NCBI GenBank assembly: GCA_029953675.1 | Contig: JAMWBK010000010.1 | Span: 1,116,001-1,180,000 of the forward strand | Length of the DNA: 64,000 nucleotides | Direction of reading: 5' to 3' | Source: Rhodosorus marinus CCMP1338 | Taxonomy: Eukaryota; Plantae; Rhodophyta | Shown here: piece after piece, positions 14,701 through 23,025 of the stretch | Layout of the letters: every line of letters starts with the position of its first letter | How positions within the stretch are numbered: position 1 is the stretch's first letter | Program-made: the position numbers and the translations under genes | The notes under the pieces: generated by a model | Database searches by the model: none | Told to the model about the DNA's origin: nothing | The model's input: only the letters and a program-made list of their open reading frames with translations

Positions 14701-15641
14701 ATCCGCTACGAGAGAAGCGATCCCATCACTAAAAAAAAGTAAGCAGGAAGATATGCACAAAATGCAAGGACAATTTGCCAGTGAACCGGACCTGATACTT
14801 GGGCATGGAAAGCAAAAGAGACACGAGGGACTGCTTGGCTATTGTACCTGAGAGATCTGGTCTTTTCTCTTAGTTTCTGAAGTGTTTCAGAAGAAGCACC
14901 AGTTCGGAGTATGCTGTTCACGATTGCAGGGACATCATCTTCCTCAACCGTGCTCAGAGCGTAGACCAGTGTGTCTTTGAGGTTCGCCGTTTGGTCTTCG
15001 GTAAGCTTCAGCTCGCTTGCGGAGGCGACAATCAGGGTAAGTAAAGACCGATCCTCTTGTAGGAGTTGTGCAAAGGTTGAGAGCACGCCCTCAATTTCTT
15101 CTTGGCTGTCCCCAATGAGATCAACAACGCTCGGGATGACTTCTCGCGGGTAAAGAATCGCAAGGTCTAGCAGACTATTGTTTTGGTTCCATATCGAAAA
15201 CAGAAGACAATCAGATGACCAATTAGAACACATAAGCCAAGCAAAGAAGAACACGAAAGCTGGAAATAACATTTCACATAGCTTACCCGTAGGTAATCGC
15301 CGGATGCGGCGAAGAAAGCTCGTTAGTCAATAGCCGAGCGACTCTACAAACGTCTTTTTGAGTGCTACACTGAGCGGCCAGCAGCAAATTTCGTCCGAGC
15401 TCGATATTTTCCTTCTCGTCCCCCCGTCGAAACACGTCTCCAGCTCCTTCGAGCAGGACTTGAAGGTCCATCTCAATCTCTCGCGCTCAGAGCGCCGGCG
15501 ACTCATTCTCTGCCATACCCCTGGTTGCTCCGAAATCCAATCCTGACGGATTGTCAAATCCTGCGAACGGATACCTCCACATCCAAGGCTATCCACGGTA
15601 ACCATGGTATTGTCCGACGCGCCCAGAACAAGAGTTATCAT
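11794..15641 (-). CDS. FANCD2: Fanconi anemia group D2 ortholog, multi-exon; start approximate
   Basis: SVVDLIGDSQ...LLQEDRSLLTLIVASASELKL...LSTVEEDDVPAIVNSIL matches the FANCD2 LPEILGDSQH...LSSIRLEDLPVIIKFIL block. VRKQL...KCIGV matches IRKQL...KLIGI around the monoubiquitinated Lys. Confidence 0.8.
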
Positions 15642-16249
15642 GGTATCTCAAAGAACATACATTCATCCAATGACAAAGGGGAGGGGGGTTCGGGGATAGT
15701 ATGTTCCCAGATCCTGCCTGCCCGCGAAAGAAAGAGCTCTACATATTTAAAACAACTTCGGCTATCAAATGTACCCAACAGACCAGGCCCTCCTGATCCA
15801 AGTCTCCTTTCCTTCACATACCGCCTTGCAGCTACCTTGCACCCGTAGAGGAGCGGCCGTTGGAAAGATCTGACAGCCAGTCAGGATCGGATGTCGAAGC
15901 AACGGGGACTACAGCAGAGACCGAGTCGAGTTTGCGTTAGCAGAGGGATCCGATCCTCAACGATCGCTTTCCAATGCCAAAAACAAAAAAGCCACAAAAA
16001 CATCTACTTTTCTGATTGTTTTAATTTGGAAAACATGGATTGGTTTCTAAATACAACAAAATATATCATCAAAAGACATGTGGCAAGACTGGATTGCATA
16101 GAAAAAGCATAACTCCTAACTGTTGGGCGTACTGTGTAAAATAAAGTAAATAATTGTCCACCAATGACGCTCAGGACGCGTGTGAACTATATATTGGATA
16201 CTACTGGAAAACGTAGAAAAATATAAGCAGCGCAAAATTATTTATTTTC

Positions 16250-16275
16250 ATATATATATATATATATATATATAT
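16250..16275. repeat. (AT)13 microsatellite flanked by a degenerate direct repeat
   Basis: Read directly. GGACGCGTGT and AACTATATATT..CTACTGGAA occur on both sides (about 16174-16208 and 16287-16342). Confidence 0.9.
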
Positions 16276-16668
16276 TTTAAAGTGTTGGACGCGTGTTGCA
16301 CCTTTATTGAACATGCGCGGTGTAACTATATATTCTACTGGAATTCAGTTGTTGCCCACAGCTGATGAAAGATGGCAAAGGAAACCTCCTATACACACCC
16401 GCACCCGTTGGTGTTGCGAGGAATGTTGGACTTAACATCTCTTTATGTTTCCATCGAGTTCCATGGCAGGACTTCTACCGTTCATTTGGTTACACATATC
16501 AAGTCGAGGATGGAGAGCTCTAAACTTCGACAGTTACACGTCCGCGGTTTCGGTTTTCGAGTGCTCTATAGCGGGTTGTTCGCTCTCAGAATTCGCTAGT
16601 TTGATACGACTCTACGGCAGAAACTTAAATACTCTCGGAGTAGCTCTTTCAGGTTACAGAACTTTTAA

Positions 16669-19600
16669 CTAGGACTTCATACCGTTCTTCTCCTCCGAGG
16701 CTGGCCTGTTCACGTCCTGGTCGGCCGGCTTCTCAGTTGTCGAACCCTCGCTCTTGGGTTCGGTTGATTTGGAAGATTCTTCAGAGGACCTTTGCTGTGA
16801 TACATCATAAATTGCGCCACCGATGTTGCGGAGAGCAACCATTCGAAACAAGGCGACCTAATCATGAGAGTTTAGCATATGTCAGGTTTGCAATGGGATA
16901 AAGAAAGCAGCGAAGAACTACATTGCGACAGCAACGGCAGACAGCCCTTACTCGGAATTTCGATCTGATCTGGAAGGCTTGAAGCTCGTCCACGGAAGCC
17001 TTGAGAGACTGTGTGGACAGCTCAGTTGAACGCAGCCATGGGTGTTTCAGAGCTTCCTCCGCGGTTGGTCTGAGGCGTGGATTCTTATTGAGCATCCATC
17101 TGACAAGGTCTTTACAGCTTTCGGACACATGTACCCATGCTCCTCCTCGAAAATCAGGTTCCTTCCTCACAATTCGTTGAAAGAGCATTTCAACGTTTTT
17201 TCCCTGGTCGGTTTGACAATGTTCGGGAGTCAGGGAACCATTGCGCAAAGATGAAATCCTGCTTTCTTGCTTACCATTGCGTTGCCGAAAGGAAACCTGC
17301 CACAAAACATTACATATACCACCACCCCTAGACTCCATATATCTGCTTTCTTCGGCTGGTACCACTGTCTTCTCACAATTTCAGGTGGTACTGGAGGGCA
17401 ACACATAAACCAAGAATATTCGACTTAGCACTACGCCTGCATAAGGGACGCGTGGAAGCAAGCATACAGTACTGAATTGTTCCAAGGAAGTCATTGACCA
17501 TGTGCTCAGGGTCCTCGGAGTAGATTGCGAAACCAAAATCAATCAGCTTCAGCTGACTCACGCCCTCCTTTGTAAACATGAAGTTCTCAGCTGCACAGGA
17601 ACAAAGCAGGCAGGGTGAATTAGTCCCAACCTCATCGCGAGTTGCACCGCACCTTCGAAAACTCACGCTTTATGTCCCGATGGGCAATCCCAATTGAATG
17701 TAGGAACTTGATGTCCTCCAGCATTTTGCGGAGGTCTCTCGCTGCATCCATCCTACAGTTCGAAACAGAGCGAGGTCATAAGCCAAGTCAGAAAACAGTG
17801 AAACAGTCGTCTTCCCTAGGGTCGAAACAGGTAGTGCTTCCGCCTACTCTGAGTATGTTCCTTTCTTTACAATACGATCAAAAAGCGGACCTCCACGACA
17901 CCTGGCGGCAAGACAAGAGACGAAAACCAGAAAACCATGGTTGAGCAAGGATGGCACGGCTACGCGCTGGATAGAAAACTATATTGAAGAGGAAGTCGAC
18001 TACGCAACCCAAGGTCAACTAGGGCTTCGCTGTAACGATGGTGAACTGCATCTGAGACTTACAGTTCCAGCACGATGCTCAACGTGTTGTTGTGCTCAGA
18101 GACTTCGTATGCGCGAAGAAGTCGATGACTCGTATCCATGTCACAAAGCTAGTCATCAAGGCAAGATAGGTGGGAACATGTCGTTGGTCAGCAGAAGTCA
18201 CGACACGATGGCAAAATCGAAGATAAGACTCTGAAAGTACCAATCGAAGACTCGCGCATTCTCCTTCGAAAAGAGCCAGCTGCTCCTCAGGAACCCCTCT
18301 TAACCGCATGTTCTTTATCGCAACTTGGACCTCCGAATTGTCCTTCGCCCTACCAGTAACAACTTCCCCAAATGCCCCCCTGAAAACCGGAGCGAAAGTG
18401 CCAGCCGAATTCAGCATAGAGTGTCTTCTGATCCGCACCCAACGGCTTGCACAGAACGCGCAATCTTTCTCAACTTACTTTCCGAGCACCTTTTCATCTA
18501 CATCCCATCTTTCATGTACACTTCCCTCCGTGAAAAGTGCGCCGGCAGCCTTTGAAAATCTGCTTTTTGCTGTAAGAGAGTAGAACAAATTTAGAATGCT
18601 TTCATCAGTGTTCCTGCTCTTAGGAACGCAAAGCAAAATCAACTCGCTTACCGGCACCTTCCGTAATCGTCGTTTCCGTCTTTGCCGGTAGTGCCTTCGG
18701 AGAGAGTACCTCCTTCGGCAGACTCGAGACCTCATTGGTATCTGCAAGCCCTGTCGGCTCAGCATCTTCAACGAGAAACTGCATCAACCGGTTCATCGCA
18801 ATAACTTTGATTTGTGCATACTGTAGACACAGGGAGGAAGTCAGAGCCCGAGCTTTCACCCTTAAAAGTGCAGACCAGCTTACTCTAAAGCGCTGTCTCA
18901 AGGTTGCGTAACGCATGAAAGGCGAGTCGACGGCCTCCGCAGCTGACAGCCTTTCCTCAGGTTCCTTCTTCAAAAGCTTGCATATAAGATCCTTTGCAGG
19001 TTCTGAAATTGATCTCCACTTCGCTCCGGAAAATGATGGCTGTGCATTTTGAATCCGGTTGAAAAGCGGGTCCAGTTTATCCTGCGCAAGAGGTTTATCA
19101 AACGACGCGGTGAACATGGTTTGCGCGACTCCAGGCATCAGCTGCCTTTGCGGGTTTTGGAGTTCTCCGTACCCCGCTTCCGAAGGGAAAGGTACCAGAG
19201 AACAGCACATACAAACTAGCACCAAAGCTCCACATATCTGCTAGGACAGGCTTGTAAAACTGGTTTCTGCAAATCTCAGGGGGAACTTTAGATGACAAAC
19301 TTTGCATGGTTAGCTTCCTTCAAACTACCAAGAACGTAGAACGGCAGTGCTCATGGCTTACGATACGGAGGTGTGCCTGTCAGCGCAAACCAAAACAGTA
19401 CAAGGTGAGCAGGTCGTGAAACTGTATACGGAACCTGAGCGTTGTGTCAGCCTTACCACACAGCTGCTTAATTAATTTGTTAGGATTATCTGACTGGTAT
19501 CCAAAGGAGAAATCTGACATGCGCAGTTCTCCCAACTCATCAGGCCTTGAGAACTTGAAAACCTCGGCTGTAGAATTATCACCAAATCAGCGAGGGAATA

Positions 19601-20650
19601 CCAAGTTCTGGCCAACGCAAACAGTCCAGCTAATTCTGTGACCTTACGTTTGATATTTCGATGAGCACAACCCAGTTGTTGCAGTAAGATCAAGGCCTCA
19701 AGCATTATCTTTGCATGAGAGCGTACTTCGTCCCTGTCACAAAAAATACCGCGGCCTAAGCGGCTAAGGAAAGCACGACGATATCTGAGCGGCAGTATCC
19801 ACTTACTCTGACAGTCCACCTTCGGCCTTGGACAACCGGTCGAATAGATCCTCTCCAGTTAGTCTGCAGCACAACAAAGAAGCTGCTGAGTTGACTTGCC
19901 CCTACACAGAATTCTATTTCACTTTTCGCGCTGTGCTCTTGGACAAACCTTTCAAGGATCATCAGCAGATCATCCCCGTTAACGTAAACTTCTATTATGT
20001 GTTGACATCTGTGCAGCTTGTCCGCCCGAGTAATCTAGCCAAAGCCGAACATTTTTGCACAGACTACCTTTAGGAATGTGGCACTAGGCGAGGCAAAAAC
20101 TTGCTATCAGAACTTTCGCGCGATCAGACCTTCTTAATAACTTGAATCTCAGAGGTGACATTTTTCTTCTGAAAGGAGTCGAGCTCCTTAAACGGGATCT
20201 TCTTGCAGAGGGCGTTTTCTTTCTTTCCCCCTCTTTCAGCAGCTTCAAAAAATTCGCAATATCGAGAACTGCATAAACAAGTTGGGCGTTTTCAGCGGAT
20301 TGCTCTCACAAAGCAACCCCTTTAACTCGGATCTGTTGCGCATACGACCAGGGCAAACGCAATCAAGCCGTTCCAGATCGCGGGGTCAAGTCCATTCTCA
20401 CCTGCGCAATAGCTGGCCTATCTCCCATCGCTTATGTACACTTCCCTCAGCAAAAAACTCCTCTGCAAGGACCCTAGTTTGATTTGTCAGGTGCTCATCT
20501 CGAGACGCTGGACATTTGCCAAAGAAAAAGCCACGCATTCCCTCAGAACTTATACAGATCATCGTCTACAGTGCTCTGAACTGAACCAAGCGTACCCATA
20601 AACAAGCGTTTCTCAGGTGGTTGGCGATCTCAATCGAACGCCTGCCAGCG
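16669..20650 (-). CDS. Tandem CaMK-family protein: N-terminal pseudokinase plus C-terminal active kinase, each followed by a CaM-binding-like helix; many exons, 5' end unresolved
   Basis: Domain 2 has LGKGAFGEV, VAIK, HRDIKPEN, DFG, GTIQYLPPE and ADIWSLG. Domain 1 has LRSSRYCEF, ALCK, HRNIKPEV, DFS, GTPPYLPPE and ADMWSFG. Confidence 0.85.
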
Positions 20651-22020
20651 AAAGCAAAATCGAAAGAACAAAAAAACCACGACTCCCCCGACCTCGTTCG
20701 TAGGCTGAGCCCCGAAACCCTCCCTTCCCTATCAGCCTACTCCGCAGAAGAAACAAAAAAAAAGCACAAAAAACAACCAAACCGAAACAAAAACAAAAAA
20801 TTAAAACGCCATCCAATTCCCTACAACAAAAGTATTTACACATCCCAGTCTACCAACAACCACATACCTTCCAACCCAAAAAAATATTTAATCACTCCTA
20901 CGCAGATCCTTCCTCACTTCAACATGCTACGAACAAGAACCCCAACTCTCCCTATTCACTTCTGAACAAAAATAAAAGCAACCTAAAACAACTCCGAAAA
21001 CTTCTCCTTCAAACCGTCCCCACACAAGGGTCAGCATCCCTTTCCCCCTTCTTAGCCTCTTCATTTAGTAGCAGTATCCCTTTCTTCTTTCCCGAACATG
21101 AGCGGAGAAAAAGTACTCAAACGAGCATTCCCATCAAAAACGAACCCAATAGAAGGGGTGCTCTAAAATTCCAATAAAACACATAAAGCTCTTTCTCCCC
21201 CACCCCACCCCCCCAACCCCAACCCCTATATTCAATGTGCGAATCATTGTGCGCATTCCGAGATTGGACTCCGATCGCTCTCCCCCCCCCCGTCTCCAGT
21301 TCAAGAAAAAATTGTTTCATGACAGAGAACTCTGTTTGGCGACTGATTTTTTTCTGGTTTCTTCTCATACTGTGAAACGCTTCAAACACGGCTGAATCAA
21401 GTATACCAGCAAGAAATAAACCTTCCCCCCCCCCCCTCCTTTCCTTTTGGTTTTTATAACCACCTAGGATCACTTTCTTTTTTCTTATTAAAATAAACCA
21501 TTATGTTGGGTTTTCGTTTATCTAATGTTTTTGTCTGGCCAGAATCAACGGAACGATCTCGTTGTTCCCCCTTTATATATTGCAATGAAATTAGGGTTTG
21601 GAGGCTTGGCGGATGAATTGCGAGAAAAAATAGATGCCGAGCTGTCCTTTTAAGGTTTAAGGTGATTGAAAGCAATCATTTTCTGTTGCTGACATTTTTC
21701 GAGTTGGGGGAATGGATCGATGGTCTGCCGATGAAGAGGCTGGGTGGGTGTTTACGACAAGTTGAAGCAACTAGATTTTTGATCCTGAATGTATTGCTGC
21801 TCGCACGGTCTGTTTTTTAGAAAGATCGTGTTTTCTTGTTCTCTGTTGAAACGATGGTTTAGTGCCTATAACATGTCATGACAACTGTGGTGTGTACTTC
21901 ACCTAGGCTATGGATTAAATACTTTGATTTTCATCTTGGTTGATGTGTGCCCTAGAAGGGACTGCTAGAGCCTCGGTGTGGCCATGATACCCGAGTAGAT
22001 ATGCGGTCAAAAAGAGGACG

Positions 22021-23025
22021 CTAAGGTTTCCTGTCGTCGGTGTCATGGACAACCTCAAGCGGCTCTGGTTTGCTGACCATTTTCTGTTCAGACTTCAAGA
22101 CGTCGTCCGCATCCCAGCCCATGTCTACGCCTTCGGAACCAATCTGGCTGATTTCATGGTACATTTTTTTCGTCAATAAGAGCTGGTCAAACTTGATTCG
22201 TCCCCGCGAACCCCACCCTGCAGCACCATGAGCGACATCTGGACGAAACTTCTCGTACGTATTGTAAGGCGTAGGGCCACTTACCAGTTCGTCCATTGGA
22301 ATAGCCTCTGAGAGACCTCGGAATGCTCCGTACACGTGCTCCAGTTTTGCACCAAAGTTTCGACTGATATAGTTCCATGGTTTAGAAGGCGAAATCTCCC
22401 TTCCGTCGTCATCAAGAGCTCTATAGCCAACTTGTTTGCCCTCTGTTTTCCTCACAGCATTGATTCGAACTCCGACAAGTTCTATTTCTTCAAGGTCCTC
22501 ACGAGATTCGTCAACCGCATGTGGGGTCTTGTGCTGCAGGATACCATGATATTCTCCCTTCTTTCGCGCATACCAGTCTGCTGAGGCCTGTGCGAGCGAG
22601 AGGCACGAGTTCCAGTCGAAACCTCGTTGTTTCGCAACAGAGCAAGCCCAGAGGATCATTACTGGGGACCGATTAACGACGACTTCAAGGGCTTTAAGCT
22701 CTACGGACGTCAATTTTCGGGGCTCCGGTTCATCTATATGTGACTCTGCAGCGCCTTCTTTGGCGTGTTTGGCCTTGGCCTTGGTTGAGGAGGCTTTCGT
22801 CGCACCAGATGGCTTTTTCTTCAGACCTGCTACTATCTTCCGTCGGGTTTTCGCATCTGGAACGGCCTTCTTCAGTTGAGCATCTGACAGGCCCCGCAAA
22901 GATGACTCGTCATTGACTCCGGCAGAGAGCAGACCAGGAATTAGCTGCATTGCAGTTCTCACATCTATTTTACATTGCTTCACCAGCATGTTCAAAACAA
23001 TAGGTACATCCTCGGCCCTGCTCAT
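22021..23025 (-). CDS. Conserved uncharacterised protein (NRSPV/NRAP-motif family), single exon, 334 aa
   Basis: Intact 334-aa ORF with globular blocks VVNRSPVMILWACSVA...SLAQA and WNYISRNFG...YNTYEKFRPDVAHGAAGWGSRG, resembling a hypothetical family I recall from fungi and bacteria. Confidence 0.75.
   Translation of the reverse strand: MSRAEDVPIVLNMLVKQCKIDVRTAMQLIPGLLSAGVNDESSLRGLSDAQLKKAVPDAKTRRKIVAGLKKKPSGATKASSTKAKAKHAKEGAAESHIDEPEPRKLTSVELKALEVVVNRSPVMILWACSVAKQRGFDWNSCLSLAQASADWYARKKGEYHGILQHKTPHAVDESREDLEEIELVGVRINAVRKTEGKQVGYRALDDDGREISPSKPWNYISRNFGAKLEHVYGAFRGLSEAIPMDELVSGPTPYNTYEKFRPDVAHGAAGWGSRGRIKFDQLLLTKKMYHEISQIGSEGVDMGWDADDVLKSEQKMVSKPEPLEVVHDTDDRKP

Follow-up and report, generated by a model that had tools for sequence, protein, structure and literature searches.

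The stretch analysed here (the window) comprises 64,000 nucleotides of Rhodosorus marinus nuclear DNA, eukaryotic in character and rich in introns, and carries on its minus strand the gene NDN08_004073, the coding region of which (16669..20599) consists of 20 coding exons and 19 introns and encodes a protein of 739 amino acids (aa) with two protein kinase domains in tandem. All features of the gene described below lie on the same strand. The exon model was built by hand and was identical, residue for residue, to GenBank entry KAJ8901868.1 (P0030), labelled "hypothetical protein NDN08_004073"; the genomic locus of this entry spans 3931 nt, equal to the model. All 19 introns have GT..AG borders and lengths of 63–161 nt, and the boundaries proposed for some of them in an earlier reading of the DNA letters (the original prediction) were reproduced.

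A search of 5.8 billion proteins placed KAJ8901868.1 in a 98%-identical cluster of 17 R. marinus sequences, which includes MMETSP transcripts of up to 735 aa. Every splice junction was backed by full-length MMETSP transcripts, and the junction between the domains was read through in P0035, P0001 and P0033, obtained from other strains. Since these transcripts span both kinase domains, one mRNA carries both, in agreement with the original prediction, and the division into two genes that would have refuted it was not found.

The first coding exon contains ATGG only (20596..20599) and is followed by a phase-1 intron (20595-20508). The start was assigned to the ATG at 20599 because the N-terminus MASRDEH, found in P0030 and P0035, needs the splice from this 4-nt exon. 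An in-frame ATG at 20538, corresponding to 748 aa, was rejected, as the GenBank protein and the transcripts begin with MASRDEH and this ATG is intronic. When intron 1 is retained the normal frame stops (after MGTLGSVQSTVDDDLYKF), and a restart at 20538 could give a product of 748 aa beginning with MRGFFFGKCP-ASRDEH. The intron at the junction of the two halves (18570..18651, phase 1, GTAAGC..CAG) is absent from all full-length transcripts, that is, spliced out; its retention ends the frame after 10 further codons (GKRVDFALRS and a stop), and no separate start codon precedes domain 2.

The shorter MMETSP "isoforms" (P0034, P0032, P0039, P0042) were identified as intron-retention products. Retention of intron 18883-18821 gives an open reading frame (ORF) of 342 aa with domain 1 only and without its regulatory helix (P0042, P0038, P0057), that of intron 17666-17591 cuts domain 2 off at HRDIK (P0032), and that of intron 16951-16858 replaces the tail helix of domain 2 (P0034). 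These forms are probably unspliced pre-mRNA but could be regulated isoforms.

Internal duplication and shared introns

The coding region is made up of two repeat units. Unit 1 (18652..20507, exons 2–11, aa 2–361) contains a pre-kinase motif, a pseudokinase domain, a regulatory helix and an acidic Ser/Pro-rich linker, and unit 2 (16669..18569, exons 12–20, aa 362–739) contains a pre-kinase motif, a canonical kinase domain, a regulatory helix, an acidic tail and the stop codon. The pre-kinase motif reads FFAEGSVHKRW in unit 1 (20425-20457) and LFTEGSVHERW in unit 2 (18505-18537), and a peptide beginning with LPPEI is present in each half. These elements, together with LRSSRY, HRNIK, DFS and the tail helices, had all been quoted in the original prediction and were found where it had placed them. 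Each unit is preceded by a phase-1 intron, and since both copies start right after it, splicing fuses them in frame.

Alignment of the two halves with each other gave 33% identity over 322 residues (E=6e-58), and the likeness at the DNA level is almost gone (82% over 34 nt, 68% over 109 nt). When the introns were mapped on the global alignment of the halves, seven coincided in both column and phase: in the G-loop (phase 2), after alphaC (phase 0), after "LE" of beta5 (donors at 19948 and 18062, phase 2), after "SE" of alphaD (donors at 19806 and 17847, phase 2), between IK and P of HR(N/D)IKP (phase 1), after the P+1 Tyr (phase 1) and after "FR" of the tail (phase 0). One more pair, the eighth, follows FPFG (donors at 19172 and 17274); it is in phase 0 in both halves and falls inside a two-residue indel, so that its coincidence is probable and not exact. 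Under random placement, the probability that at least seven of the eight introns coincide is about 3e-15. The sharing of introns was thus as originally described, but the number was not: six pairs had been counted, five of them as firm, and those at "LE" and "SE" had been missed.

The exons run parallel as well, with lengths in half 1 and half 2 of 139/139, 86/86, 57/54, 86/86, (111+15)/123 and 113/116 nt; the last pair (198/252) differs by 54 nt, matching the shorter segment before the tail helix of domain 1. The 15-nt piece is a microexon (19362..19376, GCACACCTCCGTATC) which encodes (G)TPPY, is flanked by introns of 76–80 nt and is confirmed by transcripts reading QLCGTPPYLPPE. It arises from an intron private to domain 1 (19456-19377), domain 2 having no intron at that site.

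The gene is therefore a tandem duplication, at the DNA level, of an entire intron-bearing CaMKI-like coding unit comprising the pre-kinase motif, the kinase domain, the regulatory helix and the acidic tail. The junction donor lies 10 codons before an in-frame stop, and the phase of the junction acceptor is that of intron 1, which fits a tandem gene duplication in which splicing connects a site close to the end of copy 1 with exon 2 of copy 2.

An exhaustive HMMER profile scan of 1.84 billion representative proteins revealed as close matches only the R. marinus cluster and P0002 (59% identity), P0093 being a C-terminal fragment of the latter. P0002 is encoded by a 3.2-kb transcript-like JGI contig (L001) of JGI sample 3300016877, apparently an MMETSP culture transcriptome like sample 3300017118 of R. 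marinus; the contig after removal of a retained intron encodes 777 aa with the pseudokinase–kinase layout kept. The retained intron (positions 1975-2065 of the contig) is located at the phase-1 site between QY and L, as in both R. marinus halves; therefore at least one intron position is shared across the taxa. A word-indexed search with domain 1 alone detected nothing beyond the R. marinus cluster and P0002, and scanning of metagenome contigs with the patterns RVL[AG]EEFF and S[SA]RYCEFF yielded no more orthologs, the one kinase encountered being a chance match with 21% identity.

The identity between domains 1 and 2 is 36% across the two species and 34–37% within each. Since the two values agree, there has been no gene conversion and the duplication is older than the split of the taxa. 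Its age is likewise indicated by the 33–37% identity of the halves, by the near loss of DNA likeness and by the layout common to the other taxon.

Outside its own ortholog, the top match of domain 1 is domain 2 (175 and 169 bits), the others retrieved scoring at most 152 bits. The next single-domain relatives belong to a red-algal CaMKI-like family that includes Porphyridium purpureum KAA8490827.1 ("CaMK type 1"), Porphyra umbilicalis OSX68980.1 and several more, with the pre-kinase sequence AGGxLFxxGxVxERW and the tail KRWKAAIxxVxAxNR; glaucophyte proteins rank after them. Since the pre-kinase motif and the tail occur throughout the family, neither marks the duplication itself. Derived characters common to both halves and absent from the other red-algal relatives are LPPEI, FPFG and, in "Y(K/Q)P..AD", one inserted residue before the conserved Ala-Asp.

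A neighbour-joining tree of 55 domains (289 columns, 200 bootstraps) grouped domains 1 and 2 (D1 and D2) as monophyletic in 87.5% of the bootstraps, and D2 with the red-algal family without D1 in 0%. The red-algal single-domain members formed the sister group of D1+D2, and two glaucophyte proteins branched elsewhere. The expectation that the halves are sisters derived from an internal duplication was thus borne out by the shared introns, the bootstrap value, the best match and the derived characters. The three single-domain relatives checked (L002 from Porphyridium purpureum, L003 and L004) are intronless, so that they give no date for the introns; the eight introns were either gained before the duplication or lost elsewhere, and in either case the copying took place at the DNA level.

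A CaMKI-type basic 1-5-8-14 tail was also observed in red-algal and glaucophyte CaMKI-like kinases (P0132, P0185, P0092, P0125, P0127, P0171, P0107, P0156, P0104 and P0116). The red-algal CaMKI-like kinases form one clade, share the pre-kinase motif and mostly have long N-terminal extensions. The gene thereby brings a CaMKI-like family of red algae and glaucophytes into view; an earlier survey had reported CaMKI to be absent from plant kinomes (PMC5482843).

Catalytic residues and regulatory tails

The key residues of both domains were read off one profile alignment, in the order G1, G2 and G3 of the G-loop, beta3 Lys, alphaC Glu, HRD Asp, catalytic Asn, DFG Asp and DFG Gly. They are R S C K E N V D S in domain 1 of R. 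marinus, G A C K E N N N S in domain 1 of the ortholog, and G G G K E D N D G in domain 2 of both taxa. The HRD Asp is thus replaced by Asn in domain 1 of both taxa, and a different metal ligand is gone in each, the catalytic Asn (changed to Val) in R. marinus and the DFG Asp (changed to Asn, giving NFS) in the ortholog. The beta3 Lys and alphaC Glu are retained in domain 1, as is the DFG Asp in R. marinus.

The pseudokinase core of domain 1 (18911..20427, aa 29–296) has a degenerate G-loop, LLRSSRYCEF (20250..20412), interrupted by a phase-2 intron (20401-20269), and a catalytic loop HRNIKPEV (19560..19663), interrupted by a phase-1 intron (19647-19568), with HRNIK at 19649-19663 and PEV encoded by the next exon. 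The DFG motif has become DFS (19506-19514) within SDFSFG (19500..19517). The kinase core of domain 2 (17030..18507, aa 383–651) contains the catalytic loop HRDIKPEN (17583..17682), interrupted by the phase-1 intron 17666-17591, and the DFG motif in IDFGFA (17526..17543). By the standard sequence definition domain 1 is a pseudokinase, and domain 2 is canonical, every catalytic residue being present in its sequence; the same assignment had been made in the original prediction, and no canonical HRD or DFG appeared in domain 1 after splicing.

Both domains were recognized by the Pfam Pkinase profile PF00069, domain 1 with 133.8 bits (E=9.5e-39) and domain 2 with 207.2 bits (E=3.8e-61), at a cut-off of 31.7. 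The best solved relatives were CaMK1G and CaMK1D for domain 1 (E=2.8e-32) and the autoinhibited CaMKI structure 1A06 for domain 2 (E=1.2e-50). When unit 1 was modelled by AlphaFold2 (AF2), domain 1 alone gave a predicted local distance difference test (pLDDT) score of 86.7 and a predicted template modelling (pTM) score of 0.80, and the structural neighbours found for this model with Foldseek were CaMKII, DAPK and CDPK. In a full-length run, domain 2 had pLDDT values above 90. Between R. marinus and the ortholog the cores are 55% identical in domain 1 and 75% in domain 2; in terms of differences (45% vs. 25%) domain 1 evolves about 1.8 times faster. Since its core is still 55% identical between the two taxa, domain 1 is clearly maintained and no relic in decay.

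The regulatory helix of domain 1, LRQRFRYAQIKVIAMNRLMQFL (18773..18901), contains a basic 1-8-14 motif and is interrupted by the phase-0 intron 18883-18821; that of domain 2, FQIRSKFRVALFRMVALRNIGG (16816..16975), contains a basic 1-5-8-14 motif and is interrupted by the phase-0 intron 16951-16858. A helix was predicted by AF2 in both tails, at aa 300–323 (pLDDT 80–91) and aa 661–705, respectively. The basic 1-(5)-8-14 motif, which is necessary and not sufficient for calmodulin binding, is in register in all four tails of the two taxa and in the single-domain family, with a net charge of +4 to +8; in domain 1 its positions are F1, V8 and L14 and the net charge is +5. The alignment of domain 2 with CaMKI 1A06 runs on through the autoinhibitory and calmodulin-binding segment (SKWKQAF vs. 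SKFRVAL). The helices had been described as CaMKII-like; their presence was confirmed, but it is CaMKI that gives the best alignment of the tails. Acidic, low-complexity sequence forms the end of each tail, and no EF-hand was matched by Pfam in either half.

At the position of the activating phospho-Thr of CaMKI (Thr177, a target of CaMKK), domain 2 carries Asp and domain 1 carries Gln. The Asp in the activation loop of domain 2 makes control by CaMKK unlikely. A similar acidic residue is found in the activation loop of plant CDPKs.

Proposed regulation and alternative explanations

The best overall explanation, to which we give slightly better than even credence, is that of a CaMKI-like tandem with domain 1 as a non-catalytic regulator of domain 2. 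Phosphotransfer would be performed by domain 2 alone. By analogy with CaMKI, domain 2 would probably be held off by its own basic 1-5-8-14 helix and freed by Ca2+/calmodulin, and the acidic activation-loop residue would remove the need for an upstream CaMKK, as in plant CDPKs. Domain 1 may regulate or scaffold domain 2 through an intramolecular or a dimer interface, like JAK JH2 and GCN2, a proposal for and against which we see about equal weight; for regulation in cis by an adjacent pseudokinase, JAK and GCN2 offer the precedent (PMC13519141, PMC12867742). The calmodulin-type helix in the sequence of domain 1 might add a second Ca2+/calmodulin input, which is suggested here tentatively.

Several observations weigh against this explanation. 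The full-length AF2 model (56-row alignment) had a pTM of 0.56 and pLDDT values of 35–60 in domain 1, and it was uninformative on the interface between the domains because every single-domain row of the alignment fell on domain 2. Putative calmodulin binding is read from the motif and the alignment, and in R. marinus the motif of domain 1 has Gln at its fifth position. Judging from the retained Lys, Glu and R. marinus DFG Asp, domain 1 may bind nucleotide or have an atypical activity. The tree is a neighbour-joining one with domain 1 on a long branch, and the evidence from conservation is thin, the gene occurring in only two taxa.

A more specific version of the regulatory reading, a coincidence detector with two Ca2+/calmodulin inputs in which calmodulin on the helix of the dead domain would reposition the pseudokinase, a step that would gate catalysis alongside release of the tail of domain 2, is considered unlikely. 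If true, it would represent an allosteric logic in cis of which no CaMK example has been described and which arose independently in an early-branching lineage of red algae.

Among the competing explanations, activity of both domains, with domain 1 working by an atypical mechanism in a two-kinase relay like that of RSK/MSK, would agree with the three residues retained in domain 1, with its confidently predicted fold and with the activity of some sequence-defined pseudokinases such as CASK and WNK. It is nevertheless improbable, as Asn replaces the catalytic Asp in both taxa, two or three glycines are missing from the G-loop, and the difference between the taxa in the metal ligands lost suggests relaxed constraint on catalysis; moreover, Asp-to-Asn at the HRD position is the standard kinase-dead mutation, as in CaMKII D135N (PMC7586955). 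Domain 1 might instead act mainly in trans and independently of domain 2, as a scaffold, a docking or decoy module or a calmodulin sink, perhaps as a stand-alone product. The isoforms retaining intron 18883-18821 do encode a domain-1-only product of 342 aa, and many pseudokinases act as scaffolds (PMC13519141), among them obscurin PK1 of the CaMK group (PMC10129394). However, the domains have stayed fused through a short linker in both taxa since before their divergence, and the simplest account of the contigs with retained introns is that unspliced pre-mRNA entered the Trinity assemblies; these contigs lose the regulatory helix as well, and we regard action in trans as a rather doubtful alternative to regulation of domain 2.

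Very little credence is given to two further explanations. The shared introns could have been inherited from an ancestral CaMK gene and the present gene be a fusion of two distinct paralogs, which would account for the family-wide occurrence of the pre-kinase motif and tail and for the divergence of the halves to 33% identity; but the halves are sisters, the alternative grouping was never recovered in the bootstraps, they share derived characters absent from all other family members, and the single-domain relatives checked, that of Porphyridium included, are intronless. Domain 1 could also be a neutral, decaying remnant without function, in line with its roughly 1.8-fold faster evolution and the loss of catalytic residues, but ten open and correctly spliced exons, 55% core identity to a distant ortholog and a confident fold speak against it, since neutral sequence so diverged would be neither open nor alignable. 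An artefact of annotation or assembly joining two neighbouring genes has nothing in its favour beyond the end of the frame 10 codons on when the junction intron is retained, and it was refuted by transcriptomes of other strains and of a second taxon, which were assembled independently and cross the junction in frame.

Related kinases and surroundings of the gene

CaMKI (1A06, 4FG7-4FGB, 2JAM) resembles the R. marinus protein in being its best solved relative, in the CaMK-group fold, in the alignment of the tail segment and in the register of the helix. The R. marinus protein differs in having two domains, the first of them dead, Asp or Gln at the Thr177 site, PPE for APE and an additional conserved pre-kinase motif, and its calmodulin binding is predicted. 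The single-domain CaMKI-like family of red algae and glaucophytes (incl. Cyanophora and Gloeochaete) contains the closest relatives in sequence, with the same pre-kinase motif and tail, but its members have one canonical domain and long N-terminal extensions and lack LPPEI and FPFG, and the three checked lack introns.

Named matches to domain 2 were mostly CaMK and CDPK proteins, and from the CDPKs the R. marinus protein differs in having no fused EF-hand domain. RSK and MSK combine an AGC and a CaMK kinase, both active, whereas the R. marinus halves are both CaMK-like and sisters, and domain 1 lacks catalytic residues. Plant tandem kinases are RLK/Pelle-derived, have roles as immune receptors and usually place the kinase before the pseudokinase. 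None of the 60 top solved structures listed for each half was of the RLK/Pelle type, the names being those of CaMK-group and related Ser/Thr kinases. In common with the R. marinus gene, the plant tandem kinases (WTK/Yr15, Pm24, Sr62, Rpg1) join a kinase and a pseudokinase, result from recurrent duplication or fusion and belong to Archaeplastida (PMC6997164, PMC8956640).

In JAK (JH2-JH1) and GCN2 the dead domain is directly N-terminal to the live one in the same polypeptide, as in the R. marinus protein; duplication is the origin usually assigned to such tandems, in which the inactive domain controls its active neighbour (PMC13519141, PMC12867742). They belong to the TK and eIF2alpha kinase groups and not to CaMK, are of separate origin and have no calmodulin-type tails, and regulation has been demonstrated for them, whereas for the R. 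marinus protein it is proposed. No homology to JAK or GCN2 beyond the kinase design was found, all close relatives being of the CaMK group. Obscurin, UNC-89 and SPEG are CaMK-group (MLCK-like) proteins with two kinase domains, and Drosophila PK1 is an inactive scaffold (PMC10129394), but these are giant muscle proteins restricted to animals, with Ig/Fn domains, a long disordered spacer and kinase domains that are not recent sisters. PSKH1 and PSKH2 are a live CaMK-group kinase and an HRN pseudokinase derived from duplication (PMC7586955, PMC9988210), but they are encoded by separate, unfused genes and are limited to vertebrates.

About 100 of the 150 best matches of the exhaustive search were uncharacterised proteins with 2–7 CaMK-like domains, from diatoms, chrysophytes, amoebozoans and metagenomes; examples are Cylindrotheca closterium P0079/P0311 (diatom), Epipyxis P0044 (chrysophyte) and Stygamoeba regulata P0050. 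At least 25 of these approximately 100 contain a domain predicted to be dead from its complete residue string, several with HRN. They differ from the R. marinus protein in their low identity (27–38%) and independent origin, and none has the signature of domain 1. Since the domains of one protein were mostly mutual sisters in the neighbour-joining tree, internal duplication of CaMK units is recurrent. P0003, P0004 and P0061 represent an older two-domain family, in which the first domains group apart from the second ones.

In the literature searched, no tandem of pseudokinase and kinase was found described for red algae or for the CaMK type, and neither the searches nor the literature gave a characterised ortholog family with this architecture. 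This agrees with the original prediction, which knew of no such description in red algae, but the architecture is less unusual than had been assumed, in view of the many protist multi-domain CaMK-like proteins with dead domains. The tandem of a dead and a live kinase is a design already known from JAK, GCN2, plant tandem kinases and obscurin PK1/PK2, and the gene is already public as a hypothetical protein. With two taxa carrying the gene and multi-domain CaMK-like proteins common in protists, the practical impact is limited. The intragenic duplication is unusually clean, eight intron positions having outlasted divergence to 33% identity. If the proposed regulation is correct, the JAK/GCN2 design would have evolved independently from a CaMKI-type unit, the calmodulin switch being carried along twice. 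As a small (739 aa), soluble protein, the product would be a tractable model for how a duplicated kinase turns into a regulator and for whether a pair of calmodulin sites can perform a computation on a Ca2+ signal.

The neighbouring genes (locus L005) are unrelated and encode a ClpB-like AAA+ protein, hypothetical proteins of 334 aa and 1037 aa, a phosphoglycerate kinase and a START-domain protein; no other kinase paralog was found within the window. In the region 15000-22500 no tRNA and no Rfam family was detected, and the plus-strand ORFs listed in 16000-21500 do not exceed 114 aa. Read on the minus strand, G-rich tracts (GGGGTTGGGGTTGGGGGGGTGGGGTGGGGG and poly-G runs) are located upstream of the gene at about 21195-21300 and 21420-21440, and a (TA)n microsatellite is located downstream at about 16250-16280.

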